Source: Vitrella brassicaformis CCMP3155 | Taxonomy: Eukaryota > Protista > Chromerida | Assembly: GCA_001179505.1 (NCBI GenBank) | Contig: CDMY01000301.1 | Location: forward strand, 1-64,000 | DNA length: 64,000 nucleotides | Reading direction: 5' to 3' | The notes under the pieces: generated by a model | What the model was told of the DNA's origin: nothing | Databases searched by the model: none | Seen by the model: only the letters and a program-made list of their open reading frames with translations | Translations under genes and position numbers: made by a program | In this document: positions 324 through 56,598 of the stretch, piece after piece | Layout of the letters: each line of letters opens with the position of its first letter | How positions within the stretch are numbered: the first letter of the stretch is position 1

Positions 324-2161
324 ATGGAGTGCGTTGTGGATGACGTGGAGCACCTTCAGAAGGTGTTGAGGGCGCTGCAGTGGAGGGGTTTCAAAAAGGA
401 CAAGAAAGTCCACCTCACCATTGTGCCCTCCCAGGGCCTCCGATTCACCCTCACCACCGACGCCAAGGACGCCAAGTGCACCCTCTCACTCAAAGCCGAC
501 GAGTTCTTCCGATCGTGGGACATCCATGAGGCGCTCCGCGGTCACGAGCAGCAGCAGAACGGCAACAACAATGGCGAGGGTGATGATGGCGATGAAGCTA
601 TGGGAGTTGGAGGTGGTGCTGATGCCACCGATGATGGTGATGAGGGCGGCGAGCGTCGTCTGGAGTTGGTGATAACGCTGTCGGCGCTGATCACGTCCGT
701 GGAGCTGTTTAATGAGGGCAAGGCCGTGACGCTGCGGTACAACCCTGAGGCCGGCGACGAAGACAGAGACCCATTCATCGTGTCGGTCGTCGATGGAGGT
801 GCGTACTTACTGACTGACTGACCACACTCACTCCTCAAGGCATACAGGCGTCAACCATACACACGCACTTGTGTGTGGGGTCTGGGGGGTTGACGGGACG
901 GCAGATGACACGTGTGATTCGAAGCTCAACACGTACTATCTGTTCGGCACGGAGGAGGCGGAGATCCCATTCGAGCCGCAAGGGGCGGACCTCTTCTCCA
1001 TGCTGGTAGGTACCGCAGGGAGGGAGGGAGGGAGGGACCGCACACAGCCACGATGGATGCATTGATGTATGTATATGTGCCGCCTTATCACACACATCCA
1101 TACCAGTGTGTGTGTGTGTGTGTGTGTGGTTCAGCCAAGCCTGTTGTATCAGGCGCTGGACGTCTTCTCCTCCAACACCGACAACAAAAACGCCAACGTA
1201 CGCACACAGACCTACCTGGATGAATATATGCAGCCGACCGCATACACACTGCAGCAGCGGCTGAACCCTCCCTGTGTGTGTGTGTGCTGTCAGGTTGTGG
1301 TTCGTGTGTGGCCTGCGGGCACTGCGGATTACGTCCTGTCGATGGTGAGTCGGTCAGCAACCGACAAAGGGCGACTCAGACAGATGTCACCCACCATACG
1401 CCCCCCTTTTGTGTGTGAGTTCTCTCTCTCTCTCTCTCTGTCTGTGTGTGTGTGTGTGTGTGTGTATGTGTGCAGGGTGTGGAGGGCGACAGCACGTCGT
1501 CCTGTGTGGACTACCCCAACGACAAGAAAATATTCAGCAGGTTCAACGTCAGACAGCACAGACGGTGCGCACTCAGGACGCATGGGGGGAGGTCAATCTG
1601 CGGGCGTACGTTTGTATCTGTGTGCATGTGTGTGTGCATGTGTGTGTGTGTGTGTTGGTATCACTCGATCAGTGTGGTGTACAGCCTCCGCAGCCTCCAG
1701 ATCTTGGGCAAAGGGCTGAGTGAGTTCACGAGCCAAGCAGCCAGCCAGCCGGCCGGCCGACGCACATGGAGCGTGCTGTCATGTGTCTGTTCCTTTCTGT
1801 GCTGTGTGTGTGCAGAGATAGGCCGTGACGCGACTGTGTACATTGACGTACACGGCATCATGCACGTCAAACTCATCGTCCCGTAAGTCAGTCCCCACAC
1901 ACCGACCCTTACACCCTCCCACTCGCCCCATACCATCTGCACATAAGCTCGTGTGTTGTTGTGTGTGTGTGCAGTCACCATGGTCGTGTGGATGGCCGGA
2001 TTTCGTTACTGGAGTACACCATCAACTCAGTCATCGACATGGACCACCAAGAGCAGCCGGAGGGAGAGGGGGAGGGATATGCCGACGGAGAGGGACAGGA
2101 CGCCCACATGCACGACGATGGCCAGGGGCACCAATGGACTGAGATGGATGGATGGATGTAG
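324..2161 (+). CDS. RAD1: Checkpoint clamp (9-1-1) subunit Rad1/Rec1 family protein, multi-exon
   Basis: Spliced protein MECVVDDVEHLQKVLRALQW..VHLTIVPSQGLRFTLTTDAKDAKCTLSLKADEFF..CDSKLNTYYL..VYSLRSLQILGKGL..ATVYIDVHGIMHVKLIV..LLEYTINSV has the PCNA-like Rad1 pattern, with an acidic insert in exon 1 and an acidic tail. GT-AG junctions checked for the first exons; the start could lie further upstream. Confidence 0.7.
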
Positions 2162-2473
2162 AATAGATGAGGAAGGAGGCCGGTTGGTTGATAGCATAGC
2201 TGGCTTAGTGTGTGTACAGCTGGAGGGCAGCGGGGCTTTCTTTGCATAGGCAGACAGATAGACAAGACAGACTGCGGTTGGTTGACATGACAACCATTTT
2301 CACACATGCGTGGCGTGCATTCGTGGATGGACTCCACTTTGCAATGGGATCGATATCGATCAACAAGTAGATAGACAGATACCCACTGACCTGACCCCAT
2401 GCAGGGAGGAAGCACATGCATTGCACCCTCCACTCACCCACCCACCCACCAACCCACCCACATATATATATAT

Positions 2474-7043: not shown

Positions 7044-10000
7044 ATGCCGTCCGCAACGCGACAGCCACGCATGATGGAGAAGGAGAGTGAAGCCATCCCG
7101 GTGCAGAGATCCCATGAGCCGCCGCCCTCGAGAGAAGCAGCAATGGTCCATCGCAGAAGTCCCCGCGACTTCAAGTCACGGCGGCGGCCATTGAGGTGGC
7201 AGCAGTGTGTGAGCCTGGCGTGGTGTGTTTTGCTGCTGCATCCAGCGTCCACTGGCCCGGCGTGGGCGAGGAGGCCGCCGGCATTCGCATCTAGCCCTCT
7301 CAACCCATCATCAGCAAGGTACGTACACATCTGACACTCACGGCTGTTTGTGCTGTGCTCGAAGCGGCAGTGCGTCAAGGTGCGTGCTGTGTTCTTGTCT
7401 GCAGATCGACCCATGGTCCATCAACGTTCTGGCGTTTCCCGCCTTCCTCCTCCCCCTCCTCATATCTCTCACCCCTCCTCTCCAGCACTGACCAGTTCTC
7501 TCTCTGCCACCCCCGCCCCTCCCGTCGACATTCTGCCGGTCGTCAGCTCATCACTGCACAGATGCGGCGGGGGGGATTCAGAGGTGGAGGGGGCGTACCC
7601 GTTGATCCTGCGTAAGTCAAGCCACTGACAGGAGCCACACAGACAGACAGACAGACAGACAGACACAGACATCGGCGTTCACACTGTGTGTGTCCTCCCT
7701 CAGTCGGTCTGCGCGTGAGGCTGCGACGACGTCCTTCTTCTGGACTCGTGTGGTGCCTATTGGTTTGTTGGTGTCGGGCAGCATCGCCGGCTACTACGTC
7801 ATCCGCAACTGGGTCGCTGAGACGAGGCTACTGCAGTGCAGGGTGAGAAGAAACCATATGACACACGAGCAGACAGACAGACAGACTGACTGATTGACCG
7901 ACAGACAGACGCATCATATATTGTGTGGTATTGTCAGCTGTACGTCACCCGCACCCTGCGAGTTCTGCACGACACAGCCATGCTCGACGAAGCTTTCAAA
8001 GCGGCACGGTCAGCACATAAGAACAACTCAATGCACCGCACCGCAGCACAGCAGACACACAGTGGTCCCATGGATGGATGGATGCTGTCGTGTGTCTTCT
8101 CTCCCTCCCTCCCCTTGCCTCTTTCTCACCCCAATCAAACAGGTCCCGCATTCCGTTTTTTCGTTTCTACAAGCGGCAGCTCTTCACCCGCCTGATGGAT
8201 GCGGCGCTGGGCGGCAAGGAGGCCGTCACCATGTCGGTCGAGACACTCCGCGGACTGGCCTACATCACATTCGACCTCTTCAAACTCACAGAAAAAGAAG
8301 TCAGTCAGTCAGTCAGTCATCGAGAGAGACGAACCACATGGCAAACACAACCGGCTTATCTCTCTTTGTTTCTTGCGTGTGTCGGTCTGTCTGTCTGTTG
8401 GGGTCGGTGCTGTCAATTGTGGATGGATCGACCAGGCGGCCTTGTTGCTGCGTCGTGTGATGGACCAGGGCCAGATGGAGAAGTACCGAGTGGAGAACAT
8501 CCTGCTAATCGCCGAGCTCTTCATCAGAACAGACGAACAGGCCAAGCAGGTAGTGCAGGTCACCCACACACACTCACACGGACAGACAGCTGACATGAGC
8601 ACGCCCCTGCCCGCCTGCATGTGTGGTGTGGTGTGGTGTGTGCACTGACTGCAGTTGTTGCGTCCCCGCTATGCGTTGAGTGCCATCGGCCAGACGACAG
8701 AGGGCGGCCTCAGGCTCCACCTGCAGAACAAGAGAGGTACGAACCGACGGGAAACAAACGCCCACGAGAGATCGAATGAACACTTGCAGTCTTCTCAATG
8801 TTGTGTGTGGCCGCCCACGTACGTACGTGCAGCCGATCTGTACAATGAAGAGATCGCAAAGTTCGTCAAGGTCAGTCAGTCGGGCCGTACAAGAAGACAG
8901 GCAGTACATCATAATGGTCATGCGTGTGTGTGTGTGTGTGTGATTTGGTCGGTCAGCCGTTGGTGAATCGTGGTTCGTTTGATTCGGAGGAGATCATAGC
9001 CGACTACGAGAAACTCTACGACCTCCCTCCACCACCTGGTGCGGAATGACTGCACTGCATACTTGTGCTGTGGATCCATCCATCCATCCATGTGTGTGTG
9101 TGTGTGTGTGTGTGCCTTGTTCAGGCGCTGACGTGCTCAACCTAAGCCAAGAAGATTGCCACAAGGTCTACAGGTAAACAGTGAAGGAGCGAGGAGACTC
9201 ATCTGCAGTGCACCCACTCATCCCTGTGCACACTGACCTGTCTGTCTGTCTGTCTGCTGCACCTACTACCTCAAGGAAGTACATCGATTTCGACATCAAG
9301 GAGGTCAAGCGACAAAAGGCCATGGGACTCTTCGACTACGATGTGCGTATGCGCACACCACACCCAGAACACACACATCCTGTGATATGCAGGCTCACAC
9401 AAACAAATGCCTTGTCTTGTTCGTGTGCATCTACATGTGTCATGTAGAGCACCTACGCGCGTCGAGCCACCGGCGACAGTGATCGCGAGAAGGAGATAGT
9501 GCAACGCGACAAGGACATCAAGATGGGCCGCATCGGGTGGAACGCCCCCTTCATGGAGGGCGCCAGCACCCCGTTCTACCCGCCCATGAAGGACACCGAA
9601 CAACAGGAACTCGAGGACGCCGCCAAGAAATCGTAAGAACGATCGACCGATTGATTGATGCCTGTATGCACCCATTCATTTCACGTGTGTGTGTCTGCAG
9701 TGTGTTGGATGCGTTTCTGGAGAAGGAGCTTCGCTCCAAGGACCGTGTGACCAAGGAGCAGCTCGATCGTGAGGTGCAGCAGGCCAGCAGCGCCGACAAG
9801 GAGGGATGGATGCAGAAACAACGTACGTACCTGCTTGCACACAACACCACACCCCCACACAACGCCATACTTGGTGATGCGTGTGTGTCCATGTGTGTGT
9901 GTGGGTACGTGTGTGTATCAGTTGACTGGGAGCCGACCTTCACGTCGATCAATCAGCGTGGGTTGGACCAGGTGGATATGGTCAACAGGGGCGAGAGGGT

Positions 10001-11060
10001 CGAGGGTGCCGACGACGCCCTACACGGCATGGCTAAAGTCGTCAGGGACTACTTCGTCAGACAAACGGTCAGCCACCATCTCCTCTCAGTCAGGCGGGAC
10101 GAGGGGCCAGTCAGTCAATGAAGCATGACTGACGGATGCACCCCTGCATGTGTATGTGTATGTGTGTGTTTGATGTGTGTGGTGTGGTGTGTGCAGCAAG
10201 AGAGTGAATGGAATCGTCTGCAGGCCGAGCTGCGTGCCCCGGTGGAGAGGGGCACCAAGATCGCCGTCGACACAGAGGGAGACAGCATGAACGCACGACT
10301 GGCCAGAGGTGGGTAGGTGTGTGCATACGATACGTGGCTGGGTGTCCACACAGTGAGGGCAGACAGACATGACGGACGGGTGAGCCTGTGCGTGTGCGTG
10401 TGCGTGTGTCTGTCTGCGTGGTTGTGTTGTGTGCAGGTGAGACCTTTTCCCTCCGCCTTGGCGGTGGTGGGGGTCTTGAGAAGGTCGGCGAGGAGGCTGC
10501 AGAAGTGGAGCCAGAGGAACAAAAGGAGGAGACGCCTGCCCCTGCTGCCGCTGCTGGTGCATCCATGTCGGCAGGCGAGTTCGCCAAAGTTGGTACGTGT
10601 GGATGGATGGATGGATGGATCGATGGACGGGCCACACACACGCACACACACTCCCGCACACATGTGAAGCAGTCAGCCCATCAATCTAGATACGTCTGTG
10701 TCCGTCAGGTGAGGTAAAGAGCTACGAGTGCACCGAGTGCGGCTATGTAATCTTCCCAGCCGGTACATTAACACACAGTCTCCCCCTCCCCCAAATGACA
10801 CACACCTACACACAACCTTCCGCTCCTCTCTCTCTCTTCTGTGTGCGTGTTCCTCAGCTGGTCGAGAGGACAAGTTCTTCGGCGAGGGCTTCAAGTGCCC
10901 CCAGTGCGGCGCGCCCAAGAGCGCATTCAAGGAGAGGGGCACTGAGGCAGCACCAGCCCCAGCAGCACCGGGGACGGCCCTCATTCAGGGTGTCGTCGAG
11001 GATGACTTCGACTACTCGGAGTTCGACGACATACCCACTGCCACCACATCAAGGGCATAG
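7044..11060 (+). CDS. Putative plastid-targeted membrane protein: helical body plus C-terminal rubredoxin-like domain
   Basis: Exon chain with consistent phases at the junctions checked. Signal-like CVSLAWCVLLL..PPAF, then a S/P/R-rich transit-like stretch, a TM helix (VVPIGLLVSGSIAGYYVI), helical exons, and YECTECGYVIFPAAGREDKFFGEGFKCPQCGAPKSAF (CxxC..CPxC). The start may be ATG 7044 or 7143. Confidence 0.7.
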
Positions 11061-11692
11061 AGTCTGTCATGCACGGCCGCACTCGCCCGGCTGGCCGGCC
11101 TGTTGGTGCAGTGCATTGCTTGCATCATATACCCTGTGTGGTCGATGAGGCTGTGGATACCTCTCCATGTGATTTTTAGGACCGATCTGTGTGAGTGAGG
11201 CTGTCTGTGTGTGCGCGGCACCAAAATTGATTGCCTTTGAGAGGGTGATGCATGGATTGGACGCCGTGCACGTGCCCGACGAGAAGAGCGACAGCCGGCA
11301 CATGCCCGGGCCCGAGCGTGCGCATGACGGACAAATGACTGACTGATGAGGAGAGAGAGGCTGACTTGCATCAGGTGCACAGTGCAGATTGGCAAGATCT
11401 CTGTTCCTGCCTATCCAGCCGCCATGTGCAGATGTGTCATGGTCAGCGGGGAAGCCCCTTGCGACAAAACGTCACGTCTAAGCTCGCAGGTGCAGCAGAG
11501 TGCAGCGATGGCATGCTGAAGAGCCTCACGCTGCTGGTGTGCGCGTCCAACTACCTCCACCGGAGATCTCCCACGCAGCTGCTCACATCGCTGTCATCGC
11601 GTCACCGCCCCTCCCTCACCCTCGCCCTCACCAAGACCACCAACACGTGGCTCACATCCCCCTGTTGGTGGTGCTGCTTCAGTCGACAGAAG

Positions 11693-14670
11693 ATGTCATC
11701 CTCTGCCAGCGCATCCAACGGCGCAGCCGGCGGCGATCAGCAGGGCGACCCTCCTCCTCCCCAGGAGCACACAGAGGAGGAGGGCGGTGCTGGGTCCAAG
11801 AAGGGTGCCAAGAAGGCCGATAAGAAGGCCGCCAAGGAGGCCAGGAAGGCCGAGCGTGAGCAGCAGCAGGCGGCCGCTCATGCGGCCAGCAGCGTGCCGG
11901 ACGACATCTTCGTGGAGGGCAAGTTTGGCCTGCTGCCGGTCATCAGGAGCACCGTCCTGGACAAGCGTCTGTGGAGTGCCGTCAAGGATATCGACAAGCC
12001 CAACGAGGGGCAGTGTGTGTGGATCAGGGCCAGGCTGCAGACCATCAGAAAAAAGAGCAGTGAGTTAGTTGGTTGGACACACAAATCGCCCATGCATATG
12101 CTGGCAGATCTGTCGTGTGGTGTGTATGTGGTGTGCTTATTTGTGCAGACAAGATGGCGTTCATGGTGTTTCGGCAGCAGCTGTGGACCATCCAGGGTGT
12201 CCTGTGTGAAAGCGACGAGGCCCCTGAGATTCCAAAGGACATGATCAAATGGGCTGGCAGGTACGCAGGCAACCTATCGACCTACAACACACAACACACG
12301 GGGTGCCAATCCCATCTGTCTGGCTGTCTGTCGTGTGTGTCTGTGTGTGTGTGACACCACCCGCACCGATCAGCCTGACCCCTGAGTCTGTTGTGGATGT
12401 GTATGGTGCGGTGACGGTTCCGCAGGAGCCTGTCAAGTCCACCACACAGCATTCGGTTGAGCTCAAGGTGCTGCAGCTGTTTTGTGTGAGCAAGGCGGCT
12501 CCCATACTGCCCTTCCAGCTCGAGGACGCCAGCAGATCGGAAATCGAATTCGAAAAGGTGAGGGCGGCAGAGCGGTTTGTATGAGCCGATGTGTGCCCAC
12601 GACTCACTCACTCTCTGTGTGTGTGTGTGTGTGTGTGAGGATCCTGAGTTGGTGCATGTCAACCAGGATGTCCGATTGGATAACCGCATACTCGACCTCA
12701 GGGTATGTGTGCACGAAATCGAAAGGAAGACGCCCACACACTATGCGGTTCATTTCTCTGTCCGTTCACTCGTGTGTGTGTGTGTCTGTTCGCTGCAGAC
12801 GCGGGCCAACCAGGCGATATTCCGTATTGAGTCTATGGTTTGCCAGCTATTCCGCGAGTACCTATACAAGGAGGACTTTGTCGAGATACACACACCCAAA
12901 ATGCTCGGCGGCGCCTCCGAGGGCGGCGCTCAGTGCTTCAGGTTCCAGTACTTCAACCGTAAGTAGCCCACACACAGACACACGTGTGCGCGTGTGCAGC
13001 ATACAAAGAGGTGTATGTGTGTGTGTGTGTGTGTGTCAGAGCCCGCGTGTTTGGCACAGTCCCCCCAGCTGTTTAAGCAGATGGTGCTCTCGGGCGACAT
13101 GAACAGGGTCTTCGAAATCGGTGGGTACCTTTTGCACACCCACCCACACACACCCACACATGCATGCACCTGTGTGTGTGTGTGTGTGTGTGCGTGGTGT
13201 TGCTCTATGGGCCGCAGGTCCCGTGTTCCGCGCCGAGAACTCCTTCACGTATCGTCACTTGTGTGAGTTCACGGGGCTCGACATGGAAATGACCTTCAAC
13301 TTCCACTACTACGAGGTCACCCACTCACACAGACAGACAGACACCGGCCCCTCTCATGTGATGTGATGTGATGTGTGTGGTGTCATGGATGGCTGCAGGT
13401 GTTGGATGTGCTGGAGAAGATGTTCCTCTACATCTTCAAGGGGCTCAACGAACGATGCGCCAACGTACGTGTGGCCCGCCCTCTCTCCGTGTCTTTGTTG
13501 GTGTACACACACGTGTTGTGTGTGTGCAGGAGATAGCTGTGGTGCACGAGCAGTTCCCCGCCGCGCCATTCCAGATCCCCCAGCCACAGGAGGGCGACGA
13601 GGGCGTCCCCAAGGTCCCAAGAATTGAATTCCAGGAGGTCAGTGGGCGGACAGAGGCAGGCGGAGGGGGGGGAGGGATGACCGACAGACACGTGTGGACG
13701 TGGCTGTTCGTGTGGGTGTGATGGATCAGGGTGTGAGGATGTTGCGTGAGGCTGGTACCGAGGGGGTCCCTGACGACATATCGGAATTCGACCTCAGGTA
13801 CCACAGACAGACAGACAGACAACACGGCTCACTATGTCCATCCATCCATCCATCCATCAGCACGACTCAGGAGAAGGCTCTGGGCAAGCTGGTCAAGGAC
13901 AAGTACAACACCGACTTCTACATGCTCGTCAGGTCAGCTCACACACACATTTCACGCATCTGACCGGCTGGTGGGTGCATCTGTTCTGTGCATCCCTCTC
14001 TCTGTGCGTGTATACTGCGTGTAGGTATCCGCTGAAGGTGCGGCCCTTCTACTCGATGCCAGACCCAAATGACGAGGTAGGCCGGCCATGCACACCGCAC
14101 ACGAACCTTGGTAGCTAGGCCTTCTTCTGATCTGATGCACACAGAATTAATGCCGTGCTGTTATCCTGTGTGTGTGTAGACCTTTTCCAATTCGTACGAC
14201 TTCTTCATGCGCGGAGAGGAGATCGTCAGCGGCGCACAGCGGATACACTGCCCTGGTCAGTGAGACAGACAGCACGCCCACCGGCCCAGCCCCTCCACAC
14301 ACGCGCTTGGACATACACCTATGTGTGTGTGTGGTGACTGCAGATCTGCTGGTTGAGCGTGCCCGTGCGTGGGGCATGGAAGTGGACACCATCAAGTCCT
14401 ACATCGACTCGTTCAAGCTGGGGGCATACCCACACGCAGGCTGCGGGGTCGGCCTGGAGAGAGTTGTCATGCTCTTCCTCGGTCGGAAAACACACACACA
14501 CACACACATACACACACACAGCCATCCTGCCATTCGAACAACCAGCCCGGCTGATCGACACGCACGTGTGACGGTTGTTGTCATGTTGTGTGTGTGTAAT
14601 GTGTGCAGGTTTGAACAACGTCCGCAAGACGTCGCTCTTCCCCCGCGACCCCAAGAGGCTCGCACCATGA
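11693..14670 (+). CDS. DARS: Aspartyl-tRNA synthetase, eukaryotic cytosolic type
   Basis: [24 protein letters not shown] (OB fold); [10 protein letters not shown]; [12 protein letters not shown]; [22 protein letters not shown]; [11 protein letters not shown]; [39 protein letters not shown] possible in-frame upstream start lies at 11513. Confidence 0.97.
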
Positions 14671-17438: not shown

Positions 17439-17829
17439 GGGCATCCTCCTTTCCCCACCCTTCGGGCAGAGATCATGTCCATCCTTCTCCCTCCAGCACC
17501 GCCACAGGAGCTCTCCCCCGAGCCAACCGGGCCAACAGCGCCAGAGAGCAGTACAGAGGCACAAGTCCCGCCCGAAACGAGCGAGCCCACGGCATCTGAA
17601 GCAGCCGCAAATGAGGGCGAAAAGGGTCCGCACAATGGCGTACCACCGCCCCCTCCCCCCCCACCGCCGCCCCCACCCCCTCCCCCACCCGCAGTCGTCA
17701 CTGACTACACCGGTGGGCAGCAGATAGACAGACATGAAACATGTGGCCTGATGGGGGCTTGGGTGGGTATCATGCATGTAAGTGGCGTGTGTGTATGTGT
17801 TTCATTCAGGAATGACCTATGCCATGTGA
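17439..17829 (+). pseudogene. Orphan 3' fragment of the GBF1-type gene (Pro-rich tail, last intron and terminal exon)
   Basis: FPTLRAEIMSILLPPAPPQE..PPPPPP..AVVTDYT|GMTYAM* matches the C-terminus encoded at 47354-47760, but the upstream part of the gene is absent. Confidence 0.85.
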
Positions 17830-18321
17830 TCGATGGATCGATCGAGGCAGCGAGTAGATGAAGCGGCAGGGCCTTGGCAGATAGACAGCCGTAGCTAGCC
17901 TGTTTGAGCACAAGACGCTGCGTTGTCTTAGTGTGGAAGAGGCATGGCATGCGCTTGTGTGCCCTTAGTGCACCCACTCGTGTAGGCCGACAGACAGACA
18001 ATTGACAGTAGATGAAAGAGTGAGTGACTCGATCCTGAGTGGGAGGGGCATGGGGTGGGGTGGGTGGGGTGGGTAATTAGCACTCGCATTCATGCACATC
18101 GCACTTGGCATTGTCACTGTCATTGAACCACGCACGCATGAACACGCGACCATTATGGGCGTCTGTCTATCTATCCGTCACATCCATCCACCCCTCATCA
18201 ATGTATGGATCCACCGAGCCCTCCCTGTCAGCGATCTTGAATGCCTGTACAGGAAGGAAAGCACACATCAAGAAATCACACATGGTTGAGGAGGGCAACG
18301 AGTATGGTCGCTTCCACACCG

Positions 18322-18652
18322 TCATATGTCGATCTTTATCGTGTTGTCTGGTGTTTCGAGGTGCGCCGGGAGGTAGGATGCCATCTCCTGCACGCAGCTG
18401 GATATGTCAGACGCAGTGAGGCGGGTCAGATGCACCAACTCATCCGTCTGAAGGCCACAAATGCATACACCCACACAGGGGCCTCCACAACCAGACTGTG
18501 TCGTCTAGTCGTTGCATCGGAGTGTCTTGTCTGTCTGCCTATTTGGCCCCTCCCACCCACCCATTCAGCGCCCTTGGCGTGCAACTCGAGATGACGGGCC
18601 ACACACAGGGCCGCCGCCTGGGGGCATTTGAGCAACACATGTGTGTGAGTTG

Positions 18653-18684
<32 letters not shown>

Positions 18685-20378: not shown

Positions 20379-20883
20379 GGTTGTGCGTTCCTTTCTGCAT
20401 TCCCGTTCGTCAGTATGTGCAATGCCATGCATTCACTATGCATTCCTCCCTCACGCACTGACTGCAGCGGTGCATACTCACCTTCCGAACCATGACTGAC
20501 GGACGGTGCACGCAAATTGCTCGCCCAGCTGGAACCCGTCCGCTTTCGACAACCGACACGACGACGATAGTTTGGTTCCAACAACAGAGCAAAGCTTTCT
20601 CCCTTTTCTCACGACCCCAGCTCGCTTCCGCGACGATCGCCTAGCCTGGCCAGTTTGGCCTGGAAGATCTTTTTCTCAGCGACTGGTCTTGAGCTTTCAC
20701 GAAGCAACTGAATAAGCTCAGCGGGACGTTGAAAAAGCCAACCTGCCCTGACTGACTGCGTGTATAACATAAAGGTGTCAACCAAGCAAAGCATCCAACA
20801 TACTGCCCCACTCACGACAGAACAACAGGCCAACACCCCCTTCAGTGGCACCCCCTAATCGATCGTTGTGCAGGACATCATCG

Positions 20884-35114: not shown

Positions 35115-35150
<36 letters not shown>

Positions 35151-41527: not shown

Positions 41528-41625
41528 CGCACACCGCCCCAAATCCAAAAAAAACAAAATATTTGGATCGCGACCGTTGTTGGCCGTGTTCCTTCCCTCC
41601 CCTCCCCCATCGTCCATCTCAAAAG

Positions 41626-43950: not shown

Positions 43951-44391
43951 TCCATTCGTGTGTGTGTGTGTGTGTGCATCCACGACGCCACGCGTGGTAA
44001 TACTATTATATCAGGCAGTGTGCCATTAGAGACGAGACGAGCCGCGGCCGAATCGCCCTGGACTAGAGAGATAATGCCCACACCTGTGTACGTAACGCAT
44101 CTATTTATAAGTCGCGGCTGTATGCATGCATGAAGGCTCATGGCGATTGACTGGTGTTTTTACCGGCCTCGTCCAGGTGCGACGTGCTGTGCTGCACGAC
44201 AGACTGACTGACTTCGTGACGCATTTCTTCTCAATTCCCCTCCCCCGCGCACCCGCCATGTTTCGGTACGCATGGCATTTAGGCAGTCTGTGTGCGGTTC
44301 GTGTGTGCATGGTGAAGCAGCGAGACGGCGGTCAGACCGCCTTCGAATAGCTGACATGCACATTGCAATTGAGATCTGTAGCTGCCACACT

Positions 44392-47300
44392 GTCAGTCAG
44401 GGCAGGGCCATTTGGCTTTTTCAACATCCCGCTGAGCTTATTCAGTGGCTTCGTGAAAGCTTAAGACCACGTCCTGGGTCTGGCTCTGCTGAGAAAAGAT
44501 CTTCCAGGCCAAACTGGCCGAGCCTCGGCGATCGTCGTGGAAGCGAGCTGTGGATATTATCTGAAGAAAGGAAAGCTTTGCTCTGTTGTTGGTACCAAAC
44601 TATCGTTGTCGGTTGTCGAAAGCGAACCGGGCTCAGCACGGCGAGCAATTTCCGAGCAGTGCGGGCACCGTCCGTCAGTCATGGTTCGGAAGGTGAGTGT
44701 GCACCGATGCAGTCAGTGCATGAGGCGAGGAATGCATGGCATTGCACATACTGACGAACGGGAAGGCAGAAAGGAACGCACAACCATGCATGCAGTCCTC
44801 AGGGCGTTTTATTCCTCGACAGTGCAATGTTGCGTCGACTCCTGGGGGATTCACACTCTATGGATTCTGTTTGGTTTGTGTGGCCATTGTTGCATCAGGG
44901 AGGCGAGAAGGGCTATGACGCGCCGGTCCGCACCAAGAAGACCACCACCAAAACAAATGGGCCGGCCAGAAGGTGCGCACGCCGCTTCAGGTTCCTCATG
45001 TCTGCAGATGCATTCAGATGCATGCATGGTGCAATTGCTGGCTGGTGTACATGTATGTAATCAATGCAGGTGGTCAAGAGCAGCTCTGCCGCCGCCAGAC
45101 GCAGGACCACAGCAGGGCCCAGCGTGGGGGGCAGTGCGGGGCAGAGCAAGGCAGCGGGCAAGTCTGTCCGTCCACAGCTCACGGAGGAGGACCTCAAAAA
45201 CCCAAAGATACAGCAAATGCTCTGCAACGCCCAAAACGAGGTCAGCTAGCGGGGAGCCGGAGAAATAGAAGGGCAGAGAGACGAGAATGCATTGAACTGG
45301 TGTTCGTCGGTTGTCTGGTGTGCCCTTGTTTGTGTGGCAATCAATCTCTGTATACAATACATGCAGGAGTTGTTTCGCATCCCCGCAGACTGGACCCGCT
45401 ACGAGCCGGACGATCCGACGTGGGACGAGATCCGTGTCAAGATCGCTAAGCGTCTGCTGGGGTGTGTGACGGGCCTCAACATGCGCCCTAGCACCGTCTT
45501 CTTCGCCATGCGTCTCTTCGACAGGTTCTGGTACAAAGGTACGGAGGGAGGGACCGAAGGGACGCAGTCAAACCACTCATAGATACACGTGTTTGTGTGC
45601 GTGTACATGGTGTGCTGTCCGCTGTGTCTTGCTTGGTCTGCTCTGTTGTTCTGTGTACAGTGAGCATGTTGCGCTGGGAGGATCTCAACTTCGGCATCAA
45701 ACTGGCGAACACCAACTACAGCGTCAAACTCATCAGCAACACATACCTGGTAGGTCGGTAGCTTGAGGAAAGAAAGGCCATTGTCTCGGTTGGCTGACAC
45801 GCACTCATTCATCGTGTGTGCATGACATTCGCCGCACCCACCCACCCACCCACCCAATGGTTGTGTTGTGTTGATTGGTCTGGCTGGCTGGCTGCACCGG
45901 ATGGATGGAGTGCAGGTGGCCCACGGATGTCTGTGGCTGGGGGCCAAGTTGATGGAGGCCGAGGTGCAGGTGGCTGCCAAGCACATCAAGGTCCTCAACA
46001 AGGCTAGCCCCAAGAAATACACGGAGCAGTGTTTGGAGAATATGGAGTGGTGCATCTTCGAGTGAGCGGAGGGAGCCACCACTGGAGACACGGACGGAGG
46101 GAGGGAGGGAGGGAGGGAGGGAGGGAGGGAGAGGGGAATGAGACAGACAGACAGATAGACAGACAGAAAGTCGACTGATGTATGTACACTGTCCACGGCC
46201 ACCACCCCATTCCATTTTGTCTGTGTCTGTCTCGGCAGGGCCTTGGACTTCAACTTGGCGAGCGGCAATGAGTACACGTACGTTGAGGTCATGAGTAAGA
46301 CGGCGGGGCTCGCTACCGGCTCCAAGGCCCTCGAGTTGGCCCACCGCATCACGGTAGCAAGATAGGAAGAATGAATGCGCAACAAGGAAAAATCGTGTGT
46401 CTCTTTGTTTTAAGGAACTGGCCCTGTTGTCCTTCAACTTCGTCAAGTACACGCCCCGCATCATCGCAGTACGTCGGCCCGCAGTCACACACACACACAC
46501 ACACACACAGAGAGAGAGACAGAGAGAGACAACTCACACACATGTCTGTGTTGCTCAAATGCCCCCAGGCGGCGGCCGTGTGTGTGGCCCGTCATCTCGA
46601 GTTACACGCCAAGGGCGCTGAATGGGTGGGTGGGAGGGGCCAAATAGGCAGGCAGACAGACAAGACACTCCGATGCAACGACTAGACGACACAGTCTGGT
46701 TGTGGAGGCCTCTGTGTGGGTGTATGCATTTGTGGCCTTCAGACGGACGAGTTGGTGCATCTGACCCGCCTCACTGCGTCTGACATATCCGGCTGCGTGC
46801 AGGAGATGGCATCCTACCTCCCGGCGCACCTCGAAACACCAGACAACACGATAAAGATCGACATATGACGGTGTGGAAGCAACCATACTCGTTGGCCTCC
46901 TCAACCATGTGTGATTTCTTGATGTGTGCTTTCCTTCCTGTACAGGCATTCAAGATCGCTGACAGGGAGGGCTTGGCTCCATACATGGATGAGGGGTGGA
47001 TGGATGTGACGGATAGATAGACAGACGCCCATAATGGTCGCGTGTTCATGTGTGGTTCAATGACAGTGACAATGCCAAGTGCGATGTGCATGAATGCGAG
47101 TGCTAATTAATTACCCACCCCATCCCCATGCCCCTCCCACCCACTCAGCCACGGGTCACCCACTCGCTCATCTACTGTCAATTGTCTGTCTGTCGGCCTA
47201 CACGAGTGAGTGCACTAAGGGCACACAAGCGCATGCCATGCCTCTTCCACACTAAGACAACGCAGCGTCTTGTGCTCAAACAGGCTAGCTACGGCTGTCT

Positions 47301-47761
47301 ATCTGCCAAGGCCCTGCCGCTTTATCTACTCGCTGCCTCGATCGATCCATCGATCACATGGCATAGGTCATTCCTGAATGAAACACATACACACACGCCA
47401 CTTACATGCATGATACCCACCCAAGCCCCCATCAGGCCACATGTTTCATGTCTGTCTATCTGCTGCCCACCGGTGTAGTCAGTGACGACTGCGGGTGGGG
47501 GAGGGGGTGGGGGCGGCGGTGGGGGGGGAGGGGGCGGTGGTACGCCATGGGGGGCTTGCTGCGGACCCTTTTCGCCCTCATTCGCGGCTGCTTCAGATGC
47601 CGTGGGCTCGCTCGTTTCGGGCGGGACTTGTGCCTCTGTGCTGCTCTCTGGCGCTGTTGGCCCGGTTGGCTCGGGGGTGGGCTCCTGTGGCGGTGCTGGA
47701 GGGAGAAGGATGGACATGATCTCTGCCCGAAGGGTGGGGAAAGCCGGTGTGAGGATGCCCC
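44392..47761. repeat. Inverted segmental duplication, copy B (source locus, contiguous with the full GBF1 gene)
   Basis: Reverse complement of 17439-20757; begins near gtcagtcagggcagg and ends near gaggatgccc inside a GBF1 coding exon. Confidence 0.95.
44786..46868 (+). CDS. Cyclin-family protein, copy B (possible 1-nt deletion in the second predicted exon; alternative start at 45064)
   Basis: Same exon chain as copy A from VVKSS to ..TIKIDI*. The A4 run at 44950-44953 corresponds to A5 in copy A. Confidence 0.8.
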
Positions 47762-50700
47762 ACACAATGTTAAGCAGCGGCGAGGATGGGTCGATGCGGC
47801 CATCCTGATCCTGAGCGACCAGGACAAAGTGACACAACGTGCGAAAACATGCATGAGCGCCGTTCAACAGGTGCACTGCAGTGTGCGTGTGCATAATTGT
47901 GGGGTGCCCACCATGGAGGTGGATGTGGCCACGACAAGGATGAGGTTCTTGAGGTTCTCCAAATATGAGTCGAGCAAAAGCGCAGGCGCCACCTAGACAC
48001 ACAACAGGTGACCATCGCGGTCGATCTTGGTCTGGTGGTCTATTTGCTTGTTGGTCCTATGTGGGCTGTGTTGGCTGGCTGACCTGTGCCTGTTCGACCA
48101 GCACCGTGACGATGACCTGTGTGACCTCTATAAAGTCCTGTGGCGGAGTGGTCCTCAGCTCACCGCCGCCCCCCGCTGTCGCCAGGAGAAAGTCCATACG
48201 GGTAAGCACTATGCGACATAGCAGCCCTGCAGCAGACGCCTTCCGCTGACACAACTGGATGAATGGATGGAAGAGAGACATCAAGGGAGGCGCATAAACA
48301 CACACATGTACATGTATGTGCCTTCGTTGTGGGACGGGTAGTGGCAGCTGCTGCACACTGACCTCTTCGTTGCCCATAGCTGTGTATGCCTCGGTAGCGA
48401 CAGCATTGAGAGCCCTGCCACCGTCGCCCGATGGCATGAGTGGTGTGAAGGAGTAGGTGATGAGGGGCACGAGGGCCTCGCTGAGGCCCTGCTTCCACAG
48501 CCCTCGATCATCGATGGCGGGGCACTCCAACTCGGCCTCGCCCCCAGACTCCTGCACCAGGAACAGCTTCTGCAGCAGCTGCAGCGCCATCGAACGGGTC
48601 GGCTTCGGAGCGAACGCCGCAACCACTGCCAGAGACTGACAGAATGCGAAACAAAATACACACACACACATACATACATACAGAGGAGCGACACGATATC
48701 CTTCCTATATTGTTCTATACACGCATATCCATGGCGGCTGACCTTGACGGTAGGCACCCACAGGTCCTCCCATCTCCGGCGTGACCCAGGTTGGGTCATG
48801 CCGCTGTCGGCAGTGCTGACGAGCCTCGGCAAGAGTGACCCCAGGCTCTGGAGGGCCCGAGAGCCAGTGTTGGCCTGGCCGGCTTTCCCCGCCCCCCCGC
48901 CACTCGCATCGCTCGTCTCGCTGCCGCCCGATGCAGCGAGCGTCTGCTGCTGGGGAGAGGGAGTGGTGGCTGGGGGTGCGATGGCGAGGGCGATGAGTGT
49001 GGAGAGGAGGATGGGGTACTGACCCGCCTCGACCAGCATCCAGAGGCTGGGCTGCGCCTCCAGCCACTGAGATAGGCAGTCGTAGGTCGTCGACAGCATC
49101 GAGGGACGCTCGCGGCCGTGGGGCAGGGTGGCGATGCGGTGCAGGATGGCCAGAATGGTCTTGAGGCCAGACGTGTTGGCGGGGTTGGTCAGATGAGACT
49201 GGTCGATCAGAAGCCACAACGCACAAGCGATGCGCTCTGAGAGGAAGGAAACACCACAACGATTGATTCCACACAAACTGCACACACTCGCATGGCTCTC
49301 TCGCAAGGGCGGACTAATATCCACCCGACCTGTTTGTGTGTGGGGTCGGCTGGCTGGCTGACCTGACCTGCATGTTGGTGGAAGTGTCTGCCGGGTAACT
49401 GTGCGACCAGCTGCAGGAGGTGCAGTAGCGATGCCGCCAGGTCATCCACGTGCATCAGCCGCAGACACAACCGCAGTGTGTTGACCACCAGCCGCTCCAC
49501 AAAACGCTCCTCTATCGACGCGCTGCGCCGCCCCCCGCCGCCCCCGCCGTCCTCCACTGAGGTGCCCTGGCTGATGTACCGCAGCAAGGCGTCAAAGTGC
49601 CCCACGACGAGAGCAAAGGCTTGCTGCTGCTGATCCCGCCCCGCGTCGGCCGATGTGGGAGATGCGGGGATCGTTGTGATGGTGCCCCCGCTGGTCTGGC
49701 TCAGCAGAGAGGGGGAGTGCTCACGCGCACAAGTCACATTGGTCAGCAGCTCGAGGCAGAAGACAGCGTCGGCAAGGTCTCTGAACTTGTCAATCTCGGG
49801 CACGTCGGGTCGCAGGACGGCTCCCCAGTCGGTGTTCACGGGCTTGGTGCACTGCCTGCGGGGTGCATCCGTGGCTGAGGGAGGGGGGACTGCAGCTGCT
49901 GGAGCAGCAGGGGCCTCGGTGGCTGAGGGCCCGCTGGGTGGTGGCACCCTGGGGCGGATGTCAGACAGCTGAATGAGCACCTGAGTGAGGGCCACACACG
50001 ACTCCTGCGGCAAGTGACGCAGCCGCCTGCACACCACACAACAGCACAGCCCACAACACAAGAGACAGCGAGGGACAGTCAGTGCAGTGAGGGGTGGTAT
50101 GGTGGCTGCGGTCCACGCTTGCCTTCCCCTGCCTCTCTCTGCTCACTCTGAGAGGAACTCCTCCAGCTTGCACGACTGGATGAAGCCCTTGATCTGTGTG
50201 TAGGGCGTCTGCTCGTCCGCCGTCGTGCCCTTGTCTGCATCCATCCCGTGCATTGCTGCCGCTGCGGCGGTATCCGAATGGCCTGAGCTAGCCGTGGCGG
50301 CCGAGGTGGCCAGGCTCGAGCGACCCATGGCGTGGGAAGCAGGTGGATTAGCGGGCATGGCGCCAGTGCAAGTCAGCGACGAATTGAGGAGGTACAGGTG
50401 GGTTGACGGTGAAGTGCCGATCTGCAGCATACATATCCTCAATGAATGCAGCCAGCCAGCACTCGAATGGAACGGAATGAAAGGACGGATGAGCTAGCTG
50501 GTGCCGGCACGCTATTCATCGTCATGTGTCCTGTCCTGTCGTGTCCTGTCTGTCCACCCCTCCCGTCACGAGCTATATACTGACCGCATAGATATCATCC
50601 TCGTCGTCGTCGCTGTCCTCCCCCGACGCCAGCCATGCGGTGAGTGATTCGAAGAACCCCCCGCCACCCCTCGCCGCCTCGCCCTCTGTCAGCTTCTTGG

Positions 50701-53700
50701 CCAAACGCGGGGGAGGGGGACTCCACACGCATAGCCTCGTCAGGGGCTTACCCGTCGGGTCGCTGAAGTCATCCAGCTCCACTAGAGACGACGGCAGCAG
50801 ATCGAGGGCTGCCAGCCGAAGAAGGAACTCCACCACAGATGCCCACCCTTCCCTGACGTGACGGACGACGCAACGCATTAACGTACGTACGTACGGGGTG
50901 GGTGGGTGTATTCACGTCGCATCAATGGATCGATGCATATCATATGCATACACATGAGCGGTGCTGTCTGTGACGTACACACATCCTCACTCACCTGAGT
51001 AGGTTGGCAGACTGTGAGACTGTTTGGATGACCGCTGGAAGCGCCATCTGACTTCGCACCGTCATCCAGTAATTCACATACCCACACTGGACCTGATCAA
51101 TTCAATGGAGGGAGGGAGGGAGGGAGGGAGCAACGACACACCTCACTCTTTTCACCATCGCAGACGTCTCCTAGCAGTGCCCTGGTCGAGCGCACGTACG
51201 TCTACGAGAGTATTGAGGGCCTCCGCGTGTGTGAAGTAGGTGGCTACGCGCCCGATGTCCATGAATCCTGTGATGCACTGCAATAATACGGCCTGGCCGG
51301 CATCCAACAGACAGACAGACGGAAGGCATACATACATACATACAAGGGAGGAAGGCTGCCGACAGGCTCTCTATCCCCCACCCCATGGCTGCATTCACTG
51401 ATTGGGTGGGCGCGCCGTGGCGTGTGGCCGTACGTACCTGGTCGTGGGTGGTTTCGAATGCCTTCTTGAGCGTGGCCACAGGTTGTGTCTCCCACATGAC
51501 GCCAAACATGTCTCGCTCGTGCGCGCCGGCACGCTGGACGGGGCTAAAGGTGGAGAACTCATCCATCGCCTCTTGACGACGCATTATGCGGTCCTGAGCC
51601 ACAAACAGCAATTCAATTGGCGAGCCAGTTAGTTGGGTGGGGTGTGTGGGTGGTGCAGGCAGGCAGGCGGCCATAATATGGCGAATGAGAACCACAGCCA
51701 CCCATCGACCGCCTCACTGACCCACTGACCCCCTCACTCACCCAGTATGCAGTGTCGTCCTGCAGTTCCCCTTCATGAAGGCGGATGGGTTCCTCTCGTA
51801 TTGACTCGTACACCTCCTCCAGAAAGTGGGGCGGCAAATCCTCACTCGCATTCAACCCGCGATTGTTGCGAATGAACTCCTGTACAGACAAACACACATG
51901 CACATGCACATGCACATGCACATGCACACGCACACAAACATGTTCTGACGACGTGTGGGTGGATTGATTGGATTGCCGCCTCGACTATCTGCCTCCCCCG
52001 CCCCCTTCACTCACCTGGAGGGTCATTTTGTTCTTGACGCCCGGGTTATGGAGGTCTGTGTTGAGCATGATGATGGAGTAAGAGAGGATGAAGGGCACGT
52101 CCGCATTGTTGAAGACCACCCAGCCCAGCGGCATACCACCACCACCACCACCAGCAGCGGTCAGAGCATCCTCGGCTGACGTGGGCGTGGCGCCGTCGGC
52201 CCGCGGACTGCCCCGCTTGCGTCGCACCGCTTTCTTGCGGCTTCGGACGCTGCCGTCTTCCGACCCCTCTTCTTTGGCCGGTGAGCCGTCCACGGAGCCC
52301 TCCTCAGCCTCGGCCCTAGTGCTGTGACTGGCCAGCGAGTGGGAGTCGGCGTCGGGGGCGGGTGGCTGTGGATGTGGAGTGACACCCTCACCACCTTCGT
52401 CAGCCAGCTGCCCCTCCTCCTCGTCGTAGAACTCCATCCGAACCAGACGGGGCACCTTGAGCTCAGCCGGCGACGTGACCGCCACGCCGTCCTTCGTGAC
52501 GTCCACCGAGTTGCCATTGCCCTGATCGATGGATGGATGGAATTAAGGCAGTTAAAGACCAACCGTCTGCTTGCCTGCCTGCCTGCCACGTCGCAGCGTT
52601 CACTCACCTCTGAGATATCGCCATTGTTCTGCTCTACGCGGGTCGTCGGCTCTTGAGCGGGCGGAAGCGCCGCACCAGGAGCCTGTCAGTCACAGGGTCA
52701 CAGGTGTAGAGGTAGGCAGTCATGCTGGTGGTGGCTGGTCCCACCAGACTTACGAGGGGTTGCATGACATAGTAGGCCTGGGAGAAGCTCTCCATGATCC
52801 GCTCGATCTCTTGTGCCTCCCCCGGCAGCCTAAAGGTGGCCAACATGGCCCTTAGCGCCACCACTAGAGGCATGCCACGGAAGTCAAATGACCGCACAAA
52901 CGACTCCCTGATGATTGACAGATGGACGCACACACACAAGAACAAGAGACACAATCGCCGGGGTGACTGACTGACAAGCAGATGGATGGATGGAGGGATG
53001 GTGCAGCCTCCAGGTGTGTGCGTGTCACTCCCTCCCTCCCTCCCGCCCTCACCTGACGGACGAGTTCCACTCTTTCCGCTTGGCCAAGTACTCACCGACA
53101 ACCCTGTGTGGAAGGGACACCAGGAGACATAGACAGATGCCAACCATCTTTGAAACGATGGCCACCGATGCCCCTTCCTACCTACCTAAGGTCTAGTCCC
53201 GGTGTGTCTTTGAGGAAACTGCACATGGCCTCAGGGGTGATGGGAATGGGCAACAGACCTGCCACAAACGAGCAACAGGTAGGTTGCTCTAGGCATACAC
53301 GCCTATCATTACCCAGGTTCTGCAGAGGACCGATGCACTTGGACGGCTCAGAGTTGAACACCTACACACATGACACACACAGGGATCTATCGCACAACCG
53401 TCGCCGCTATCTATCTATCTGTCCATCGACCAAACCGTACCCACCCACCTGTGCACCGAGAGCCAGTCGCTTCTTCTTTTCCTTGCGCACCCGCAGGTCG
53501 TCTGCATCGGTGGGGGTGTCCTTCTTCTTGCGTGCCGCGGCCTCCACGGGCTGAGCCTCCTCCTCCTCCACTGCAGGGGAGGGGGGAGCCGCAAACCGGG
53601 GACTGTGGAGCCGGGCAGCTGATGACACGTCAAAGTGACATCTAACAGACAAACAGAACAAATACCAACCAACCAACCACAGACAGGCAGGCAGACACAA

Positions 53701-56598
53701 GAAACAGTCAGTGCACCAACCAATGTGCACCCATCCATCCCCGCAGGTAGATGACCTGTGGTGCACGAGCAACTGACCTGGTTGCGATTGAGTGGACGAT
53801 GCTGAGTAGCCCCGACAGAGCAAGTCGGTTGAGTGTGTTGAATGCCCCGGTGGATGAGGTGACTGTGCCGAGCTGCACAGAGGAGCCGCCCTCCACCACA
53901 GTGTCGACACGTGGGGGCGAGCTCTGCTCCGTGAGGAACTTGACCAGCGTCTCAAACAGGTTGGTGCACCGAACGTCACAGTCGTAATTCTGAGTCAAGA
54001 ACGAGGGGCGGACGAATCAATCAATGAAGCAATCCGACACACGGATTGCGCTTGGCCACTCACTGACCTCGTATAGCTCGATCATCAGTTCTGCAGGCAG
54101 GAGACGGACACAAATAAATACACACACGTACATTCGCGATCCAGTGAGGGAGGGGTAGGTGGCACTGATACCTACCTGGTTCTCGGCAGAACTCTAGAAG
54201 GGATTCGAGTGCCAGCTCCCTCTGCTCAAAGCCAGTAGGGGAATCAGAGTCCGTTGAACGCGCTATCCTGCACAGGGAGACACAGACACACCGACAGACA
54301 GGGAGAAAACAGACGAGAACAAGTGTCTGGTCACTGTTTGCGGCTGGCGTTTCATCACCCCGGTGATAGGCGTGATGTGTTATGTTTGCAGGTGTGTGGC
54401 TGTGACCTGAGGTGTATGGAGTTGAAGAAGACCTCCAGCTGCACCTTCAGGTGCCTCTTGAAGTACTGGAACAGCAGAAACACCGACCGGAGAGTCACCG
54501 AGAGAAGGAACAACGACTCGGTCCGCGAATTCTGCAGCAAACTCTTGCATATATCGTCCTGAACGACACACACCACATCACACCACACGGACACACCACA
54601 GAGTATACCCACATACCTGTCTGCCTGCCTGCCTGCCTGCCTGCGTGCTTCCCTCCCTCCCTCCCTCCCTCCATCCATCCATCCATCCGTACACTATTGC
54701 TTGGTGGGTGGGTGGGTGGCTAACCTGTATAACAGCGACGAGCAGGTCCGACTTGGCGACCTCCTCCCCTCCCGTTTCGAGCGCCACATTCAGCAGCGAC
54801 AGGCCCAGGGACCGCATCTCCTGGCAGAACTCCTCATCCTCATTCGGGCTCGGCGAAAACCCAAAACCCGAAGCCTGCCCCACACACCAAACCACACCAC
54901 ACAGACACAGCCACCGTTGAATTGAGTGCACAAGGTAGGTGATGGCCGTATCAAGTGGTCCCCACTCCCATGTCGCTAGGCTCCCTGCCTAGGCTCCCTG
55001 CCTTGTCCCCTCTCCTCTGCCCCTGTCTTGTCTGTCTGTCTGTCTGTCTGACCCAATCGTCGTGGAACTGTCCGTCCGGTCCAGGTGACCGCTCCCTGGT
55101 GCGAGGCGACTGCGTGGGCGTGATGGTGGGGCTATTGGAACGTGCACCGCGCACTCGAGGGGGTGTGCGAGAGCGGCTGTGCTGGTGGTGGTGCACCTGG
55201 CCCGACCCTCCTCCGTCGCCCAGCCGGTTGCTGGACGGCCGGGGGGCCGCCTGCTGGGGAGCGGACGTCGCTGCTGACGAAGACGAGACGGCGGCCGATT
55301 GCTGGTGGCCGTAGGACGTGAGGAAGGCCAGGAACTTGAGCGTCTGATACATGCACTCGACACCATACGGCCGAACAACCTGTCAGATGGATCGATGGAT
55401 TACCCGACCGACGTACACAACCACCCCAACCAGAGGACGCCAGTGCATGCCATGCTCGCCACAGCTCATCTGTCCATCCATGCATTCACCGACCTGCCTC
55501 TGTTTGGGGTGCACCTTGACCCGATGTGCCCTGGACTTGTGGCAGCCGAAAATCGTGAGAATCATCTGCAGGAGGATGTTCTCAGAGCTGCTGCGCAGCA
55601 GATACGACGCACGCGGCTGGCGGCTGACACACAGACAGAAAGATAAAGAGAAACAAGAAGGAGAGAACACCATGAGCCGGCCGAACAGACAGTCTGACGA
55701 AGCCACTCACGTACCTGATTTGGTAGGCCTTTTTGACCATGAGCCAGACGGTCTCATCAGTCAGATACTCACCCGCAGGGCAACGCAAGGTGTCGATCAG
55801 CACGCCCAGAATCTTCAGCAGCACAACCTGCGTGCACATTGTTGACCTGCCTGCCCTCACGCCAGCTCCTCTAGCGCAACCACAACCTTGCTTCTTACTT
55901 CGTCTGAAGGTGTTGCGGATCCTGTGAATCGGCATCCAAGGACGCCCTTAGCGATGGCATTGATGGCGGTAGCGCATCCCGGGCTGTCGGGGTGGATGAG
56001 GCCATATGCAACAAATTTGTTGACTGCGGCCAGGGCCACTGCGGTGATCGGGCCATTGGTTGCCTCGCTCTGGATGACGTTCAGGAAGGGCTCCAGGTGC
56101 GTTACATCCACATGGAACTCGTTGACATACGTCAGCGAGTCAAACAAGTGCTGAAACGACCTCACTATGGGGCTCTCAGCCTCCCGGGTGATCTGCAGTG
56201 CACCGTAGCAACCAACACACAGCCACACCAAACGATGACAGTGACTCTGGAAAAGAAGAATCACCCTCTTTCTCTTTCTTTCTTTCTTGACCTCAGAGAT
56301 AAACCTAGCGGCGCTCGTGAACTGCTTGGTCAGTCGCAGAACCTGCACACGTCAGGAAATGGCCCACACGGTGCTAGATCTATGGGCTGTCCCGTGCACA
56401 GCGTACCGTGAGGATGTTGTGAATCTCCTGACAGACAGGCAGGGAGGCAAAAGAGGAAACACGTAGTGACAGTCAGCCAGTCGGTATGTATTGTTTGTTT
56501 GCCTCTTTCGAGATGCTTACATTCTTGACGCACTTCACAGGGGACACAACCGAAGGGGACGCCTGGAAGGCCTGAAACTCTCCGTGGCTGCTGTGCAT
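47354..56598 (-). CDS. GBF1: Large ARF guanine-nucleotide exchange factor of the GBF1/Gea/GNOM class (DCB-HUS-Sec7-HDS1-3, Pro-rich tail)
   Basis: VKNEIHNILTVLR; LEPFLNVIQSEATNGPITAVAL; LKVQLEVFF; YENYDCDVRCTNLFE (HUS box); FRLPGEAQEIERIMESF and FILSYSIIMLNTDLHN (Sec7); DAVFCLELL; LLDSYLENLKNLILV; WGILTPAFPTLRAEI. Confidence 0.93.

Follow-up and report, generated by a model that had tools for sequence, protein, structure and literature searches.

How splice sites are recognized is poorly known outside animals, fungi and plants. At canonical metazoan and plant 3' splice sites, the acceptor lies behind a polypyrimidine tract and a zone from which AG is excluded. Hui et al. reportedly described, in 2003 and 2005, intronic splicing enhancers that consist of CA repeats or CA-rich sequence and are bound by hnRNP L, and Rogic is said to have described, in 2008, yeast zipper stems located between the 5' splice site and branch point. 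A further system is that of the (AC)m-(GT)n structured introns of teleosts and lamprey, in which AC repeats follow the 5' splice site and GT repeats precede the 3' splice site (Lin et al. 2016, PMC4691745). Such introns make up 0.09-2.29% of the total in fish, where the AC and GT repeats are found together more often than expected (PMC4691745). An earlier note on a stretch of DNA from the alveolate Vitrella brassicaformis CCMP3155 cited this fish precedent, accurately, and proposed that a CA-rich 5' arm and a complementary GT-rich 3' arm may define a large share of the introns there by pairing. Here, the 64,000 nucleotides (nt) of that stretch (contig CDMY01000301.1, positions 1-64,000; hereafter the window) were analyzed. 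The introns of the window are strongly polarized, the main axis of the polarity runs from A to T, and the two arms vary independently of each other.

The window has a GC content of ~56% and holds many genes, each with numerous short introns. Genes were predicted with a self-trained gene finder purpose-built for the window, which combines a 3-periodic Markov coding score and narrow donor and acceptor matrices with two extra terms, namely, a position-blind intron-composition score and a length prior. During tuning, codon scores with full splice-site matrices overshot to 539 introns, and heavy penalties left too few. The main set comprises 147 introns in 16 genes, with a median intron length of 96 nt; an intron predicted at 10110-10223 was excluded from every statistic, and an assembly gap at 31185-31484, where the prediction was split, lies outside every counted gene and intron. 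Fourteen of the 147 introns were checked by homology, through homologues of aspartyl-tRNA synthetase (AspRS). The AspRS gene (11513..14670, + strand, 15 exons and 14 introns) serves as the reference set: the protein predicted from it can be aligned over its whole length with homologues (P0098: 540 amino acids, 50% identity; exhaustive phmmer search), the best of which come from an orchid, a diatom, a foraminiferan and amoebae, and all 14 exon junctions are gap-free in a MAFFT alignment. In addition, the seven intervals that the earlier note had given as examples all coincide exactly with introns of the gene finder.

Of the 147 introns, 133 have more A+C in their 5' half than in their 3' half (binomial p 1.7e-25). 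The bias is similar on both strands (69/76 on the + strand and 64/71 on the - strand) and is present in every AspRS intron (14/14). The same polarity is found in 75% of introns in the set predicted without the composition term, from codon scores alone, and in 35% of GT..AG pseudo-introns on the antisense strand, which served as a control. Runs of at least 8 nt tell the same story in terms of repeats: CA-only runs number 52 in 5' halves and 16 in 3' halves, GT-only runs number 88 in 3' halves and 15 in 5' halves, and only 1 intron shows the reverse layout, with a GT run in its 5' half and a CA run in its 3' half. The CA runs begin at a median of 20 nt downstream of the donor, and the GT runs end at a median of 12 nt upstream of the AG. 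Tracts of CA/TG with at least 4 units occur at 6.06 per kb in introns, compared with 0.28 in coding sequence and 1.04 elsewhere. The polarity claimed for this DNA, from a CA-type 5' arm to a GT-type 3' arm, is thus real and extends to most introns in the window. The repeats were also claimed to follow the sense strand of genes on both strands; this is indeed seen, but it is uninformative, because a CA...TG layout is its own reverse complement and reads as "sense" on both strands automatically. The real content of that claim is the order, CA and then TG, between the GT and the AG. As for dinucleotides, the observed/expected ratio of CpG is 0.60 in introns, 0.84 in coding sequence and 0.81 elsewhere, and TG+CA is over-represented in introns (1.80). 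As a speculation, the decay of CpG could be what seeds the 5' zone with CA and the 3' zone with sense-strand TG.

The base composition by intron decile shows which bases carry the polarity. Between the first deciles and the last, the share of A drops from 0.29-0.32 to ~0.10 while that of T climbs from 0.13 to 0.38; G stays steady at ~0.27-0.31 and C declines slightly. Consequently, the AT skew runs from +0.40 to -0.62 along the intron, whereas the GC skew moves only from 0 to +0.2, and the polarity is mainly one of A against T rather than of A/C against G/T. The repeat families are distributed in the same way. Counted in 5' and 3' halves, respectively, the families that contain A and lack T lie toward the 5' end, namely (CA)3 (43/14), (GA)3 (10/3), (GACA)2 (20/4) and the G-rich (GGGA)2 (8/1), and those that contain T and lack A lie toward the 3' end, namely (TG)3 (16/95), (TC)3 (5/14) and (TGTC)2 (2/20); (GGAT)2 (8/10) and (GCAT)2 (5/4), which are neutral with respect to A and T, show no polarity. 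Repeats of the (GGAT)n/(ATCC)n type are common in introns and just past the AspRS stop codon, for example at 10600-10625, 13840-13860, 14690-14710 and 15975-15990. About twice as many introns carry the 3' signal as the 5' signal: (TG)3 occurs in the 3' half of 65% of introns and (CA)3 in the 5' half of 29%. The point at which the skew flips moves with intron length (slope 0.38) and lies on average at 0.42 of the length (standard deviation 0.20). Avoidance of GT decoys in the 5' zone was considered and rejected, with GT at 0.98 of expectation and T depleted there in every context.

At the 3' end, the last 30 nt of the introns consist of T 0.38, G 0.31, C 0.20 and A 0.11, which gives 0.58 pyrimidines and 0.69 G+T. 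In this stretch, pyrimidines reach at least 70% in 24 of the 147 introns and G+T reaches at least 70% in 70. T makes up at least 30% in 126 of the introns, and G and C trade off against each other (rho -0.75), so that 96 GU-type introns can be told from 51 of CU type (~35%). With the GT runs ending ~12 nt before the AG, the UG-rich tract occupies the place expected of a pyrimidine tract, as the earlier note had remarked. AG is depleted threefold in the 3' part of the intron (observed/expected 0.37), and an AG exclusion zone is present: the nearest upstream AG lies at a median distance of 52 nt, about half of the intron. One acceptor rule skips the 40 nt next to the donor and then takes the earliest AG that is preceded by 25 nt without AG in which T is no rarer than A; it finds the correct acceptor in 114 of 147 introns, compared with 66 of 147 for the naive first AG. 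The commonest A-containing 5-mers between -45 and -10 from the acceptor are ATGTG, TGTAT, CATGT and GTATG, that is, a lone A inside a UG run; such lone A residues, which have no positional peak, could be candidate branch adenosines. The window contains no U2AF gene. Quadruplexes of the pUG-fold type were rejected as a general explanation, with (TG) repeats of at least 12 units in only 3 introns.

The polarity makes the two ends of an intron complementary, and this complementarity is measurable. Duplexes between 5' and 3' arms reach -20.9 kcal, compared with -15.8 for 5' with 5' arms and -15.6 for 3' with 3' arms, so the arms are generically complementary, as claimed, with an advantage of ~5 kcal over same-arm duplexes. 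The real introns also form 19.3 pairs across the two halves, compared with 14.5 in whole-intron shuffles. On the other hand, the arms do not behave as partners. For runs of at least 8 nt, the co-occurrence of CA and GT has an odds ratio (OR) of 0.53 (p 0.08), and the run lengths are uncorrelated in practice (Spearman -0.07). Lin et al. 2016 require ACACAC no more than 50 nt from the 5' splice site and GTGTGT no more than 50 nt from the 3' splice site. In the window, 22 of the 147 introns (15%) satisfy this definition and none is arranged the other way round, although in introns of 96 nt the two 50-nt intervals span nearly the entire intron. These 22 introns compare with 18.4 expected (OR 1.7, p 0.18). 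When each 5' arm is hybridized in silico with its own 3' arm, the duplex reaches -21.6 kcal, compared with -20.9 with other partners; the mean rank of the own partner is 0.48, and there is no same-gene effect. Pairing predicts that C in the 5' arm should track G in the 3' arm; the correlation is -0.13 (-0.19 when centered by gene), and that of 5' G with 3' C is also -0.13, so the complement classes do not co-vary. Moreover, GU-type and CU-type introns have identical 5' arm composition, and the duplexes are weaker in the CU type (-18.9 versus -23.0 kcal).

The folding of whole introns gives a similar picture. The mean fold energy is -29.5 kcal for real introns and -28.4 for dinucleotide shuffles (mean z -0.36, p 0.015), and introns whose halves were shuffled separately fold at -28.5 kcal. 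Chimeras that join the 5' half of one intron to the 3' half of another fold at -29.8 kcal, which does not differ from the real introns (p 0.42). The earlier note had held that folding no better than in composition-matched shuffles would refute intron definition by pairing, and with a mean z of only -0.36 that outcome is nearly reached. Its example introns do fold end to end, with z values from +0.74 to -3.94. In the AspRS gene, whose introns include the examples 12959-13039, 13121-13217 and 14482-14608, the intron at 13121..13217 (+ strand) has a CA-only run of 26 nt at its 5' end and a GT-only run of 22 nt at its 3' end and is predicted to form a single end-to-end hairpin (minimum free energy, MFE, -48.9 kcal, z -2.35). 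The intron at 29952..30094 (+ strand) carries the nested repeats (GACA)5 ... (GGAT)4 ... (CT)n ... (CTGT)5 and is predicted to form a 20-bp outer stem (MFE -61 kcal, z -3.94), which none of 200 shuffles equals. A predicted intron on the - strand, at 15251..15354, has a palindrome at its center (MFE -32.5 kcal, z -2.81). Overall, the arms vary independently and are not detectably partners. The proposal that pairing defines the introns is therefore not borne out in the window: the arms do not robustly co-occur, the own partner ranks at 0.48, 5' C and 3' G correlate at -0.13, and CU-type introns keep their 5' arms.

An inverted duplication within the window allowed us to compare paralogous introns. 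Copy A (17449..20762, - strand) and copy B (44386..47743, + strand) form inverted repeats of 3.4 kb, ~24 kb apart, with 92.9% identity over 3402 bp in a self-megablast (17449-20762 against 47743-44386). Copy A holds a 10-exon gene with 9 introns (18322-20378), copy B holds its counterpart (44681-46868), and the two genes supply nine paralogous intron pairs. The indels between these introns are confined to repeats, and none that affects one arm has a counterpart in the opposite arm. Substitutions per site amount to 0.033 in introns, compared with 0.069 at synonymous sites (p 0.027) and 0.063 in the flanks (p 0.001). This halved divergence hints either at constraint on the intron sequence or at gene conversion that may be limited to the transcribed part. 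The protein of the duplicated genes has ~330-350 amino acids and a dN/dS of 0.35; two of its exons gave no Pfam match, and a stretch reading LFDRFW may be cyclin-box-like.

Based on the results presented above, we favor, with a probability of about 0.55, the explanation that two independent RNA-level end signals orient the microsatellites and that the complementarity of the arms is a generic by-product. The introns would then be of the ordinary GT-AG spliceosomal type, with two independent position-dependent constraints on the RNA. The 5' zone would be kept A-rich and U-poor; the 3' zone would be kept U-rich, A-poor and AG-free and would stand in for the pyrimidine tract, with G rather than C as its usual second base. 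Microsatellites, whose density in introns is six times that elsewhere, would persist in a zone only if their orientation suited it; CA, GA and GACA would thus be found close to the donor, and UG, UC and UGUC close to the acceptor. Since the two zones would share their duplex repeat families but carry them in opposite orientations, the two halves become complementary as a by-product. As to function, we infer that the end-zone constraints are splicing signals: the 3' tract would serve first-AG selection as the equivalent of a pyrimidine tract, and the 5' zone would stay clear of decoy 3' signals or act as a CA-type enhancer. That the constraint acts on RNA is suggested by the flip itself. As a DNA duplex, a CA tract is the same as a TG tract, so a change of sense polarity in the middle of an intron cannot be a property of duplex DNA; it is also not what a uniform transcription-coupled mutation bias would give, and it therefore points to selection on RNA.

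Several observations weigh against two independent end signals, and some of them lend weight to pairing. Because the flip point scales with intron length, a design with two arms fits at least as well as a tract of fixed length. The (CA)3/(TG)3 association is weakly positive within introns (OR 2.5, p 0.035, uncorrected), that of (GACA)2 with (TGTC)2 has an OR of 3.5 (p 0.033, uncorrected, 6 introns) and is absent across exons, and 15% of introns fold with z below -2. The branch-point motifs CTRAY and TNAY show no positional peak in the 147 introns, and no binding factor was identified. The estimate of constraint comes from one gene pair in which gene conversion is possible; moreover, 133 of the 147 introns are ab initio models only, and the intron-composition term might favor repeat-rich introns. 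The alternative to which several of these points lead is a generic zipper, in which the CA-rich 5' zone pairs with the UG-rich 3' zone, juxtaposes the splice sites and eases the need for U2AF2, as in fish. Such a zipper would need no specific partner, in that during transcription the 5' arm meets its own 3' arm first. It draws on the ~5 kcal by which 5' with 3' duplexes are stabler than either same-arm combination, the cross-half pairs (19.3 against 14.5 in shuffles), the fish criterion in 22 of 147 introns with no reverse layout, the scaling of both zones with intron length, the end-to-end folds of the example introns, the motif-matched (GACA)2/(TGTC)2 association, and the sixfold density of repeat tracts in introns. 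Nevertheless, total stability is scarcely above that of shuffles (z -0.36), neither the chimeras nor the duplex ranks reveal any advantage of the own partner, and 5' C and 3' G correlate negatively. The CU-type introns, 35% of the set, keep CA-type 5' arms that cannot pair with their tracts, and their duplexes are weaker; 3' arms outnumber 5' arms two to one; and the (CA)3/(TG)3 association is about equal across exons (OR 2.0) and within introns. We therefore regard the generic zipper as rather unlikely, though a serious contender. Its strong form seems doubtful to us; in it, a genome-wide zipper would define almost every short Vitrella intron co-transcriptionally, in that the A/C-rich start of the intron pairs with the first U/G-rich stretch downstream, and would replace both the pyrimidine tract and recognition by U2AF2.

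Two further explanations were considered. In the one, the arms are terminal inverted repeats of introners, which are intron-creating transposons, or footprints of fold-back repair, and play no part in splicing. Introners with terminal repeats are reportedly present in other alveolates, and the inverted-repeat layout of the Vitrella introns resembles them; microsatellites also mutate fast, and the indels of the paralogous introns all fall within repeats. A neutral or mobile origin of this kind is nevertheless very unlikely, because an all-against-all BLAST of the 147 introns found no families except the 9 paralogous pairs and low-complexity matches, and because arms that arose jointly should co-occur, which these do not. 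Furthermore, insertion of a palindrome does not predict a fixed order of CA and then TG relative to GT..AG, a uniform transcription-coupled mutation bias cannot flip in the middle of an intron, and the paralogous introns diverge more slowly than synonymous sites. In the other, the polarity is an artefact, produced by the gene finder or arising by chance from the abundance of repeats in the genome. The intron-content term was trained on repeat-rich introns, and 133 introns are without independent support. However, this term ignores position and so cannot create order; all 14 homology-checked introns are polarized; the run with codon scores alone still gives 75%, against 35% in the antisense GT..AG controls; and the earlier reader marked the same seven intervals independently. 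An artefact is thus extremely improbable.

Other features of the window bear on the gene models from which the introns were taken. A 17-exon gene with a rubredoxin-like C-terminal end (7562..11060, + strand; weak Pfam match RUBY_RBDX) holds the example introns 7612-7703 and 9823-9921 as well as the excluded one at 10110-10223. The top source of minus-strand introns is a Sec7-domain gene of 32 exons (47354..56598, - strand; Pfam Sec7, E 3.5e-11). Among the other gene models, Pfam matches were obtained for Rad1, alveolin (IMCp) and Sec7, and a Pfam search with the ten longest open reading frames gave nothing useful. The alveolin match lies in one exon of an 8-exon gene at 40308-41527 (- strand; IMCp, inner membrane complex protein, E 5.6e-05), and this match is in keeping with an alveolate origin of the window. 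In the gene model at 15101-15250 (- strand), the last exon ends at 15209 in a stricter model or at 15101 in a looser one. The flanks of the assembly gap (30940-31184 and 31485-31640) are very GC-rich and C-rich, with proline-codon-like runs, and no gene model reaches the gap. Of two loci retrieved in the search for orthologous introns, one was a transcript and the other was probably a fungal contig, to judge by a SUR7-family gene beside it, and AspRS exon 1 brought up no relative in a metagenome scan.

With regard to significance, our literature search found no paper that describes this pattern in chromerids or other protists, and the genome paper (PMC4501334) does not mention it. About 90% of the introns flip from A-rich to U-rich in their middle, and a UG-rich tract usually stands where textbooks put the pyrimidine tract. 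If the 3' splice site is in fact recognized through this tract, then UG-rich RNA must be read by the U2AF2 orthologue of the lineage or by another factor. Should pairing play a part, these introns would be the first example of structure-assisted intron definition outside vertebrates and the first at whole-genome scale; the strong zipper, if true, would mean that a relative of apicomplexan parasites has arrived convergently at the fish mechanism and uses it far more pervasively. Either way, the introns follow a simple, testable code, which should improve gene prediction in chromerids.

Four known systems come closest to the Vitrella introns. Like the yeast zipper stems, they invite the proposal that intramolecular pairing shortens the effective distance between splicing signals; the yeast stems, however, are of unique sequence, lie in long introns and in some cases are supported by covariation, whereas the sequences concerned in Vitrella are low-complexity repeats in short introns, and no covariation is seen. 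Like the hnRNP L enhancers, the 5' zone places CA-rich sequence shortly downstream of the 5' splice site. Those enhancers belong to single mammalian genes, whereas the Vitrella zones occur in many introns across the window, and GA and GACA serve equally well there. The likeness to the fish (AC)m-(GT)n introns is closer and comprises the same polarity, a GT tract in the place of the pyrimidine tract and a predicted bridging hairpin. The host lineage is an alveolate and not a vertebrate, however, and although 15% of the introns in the window qualify, the co-occurrence of the two repeats equals independence (22 against 18.4); moreover, the polarity of Vitrella is a whole-intron gradient from A to U in ~90% of very short introns. 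Finally, like the canonical 3' splice site, the Vitrella acceptor is preceded by a U-rich, A-poor, AG-free stretch, and the first AG behind it is mostly the acceptor. Unlike the canonical tract, this stretch has G (0.31) rather than C (0.20) as its usual second base, is at least 70% pyrimidine in only 24 of 147 introns, spans about half of the intron and scales with intron length.

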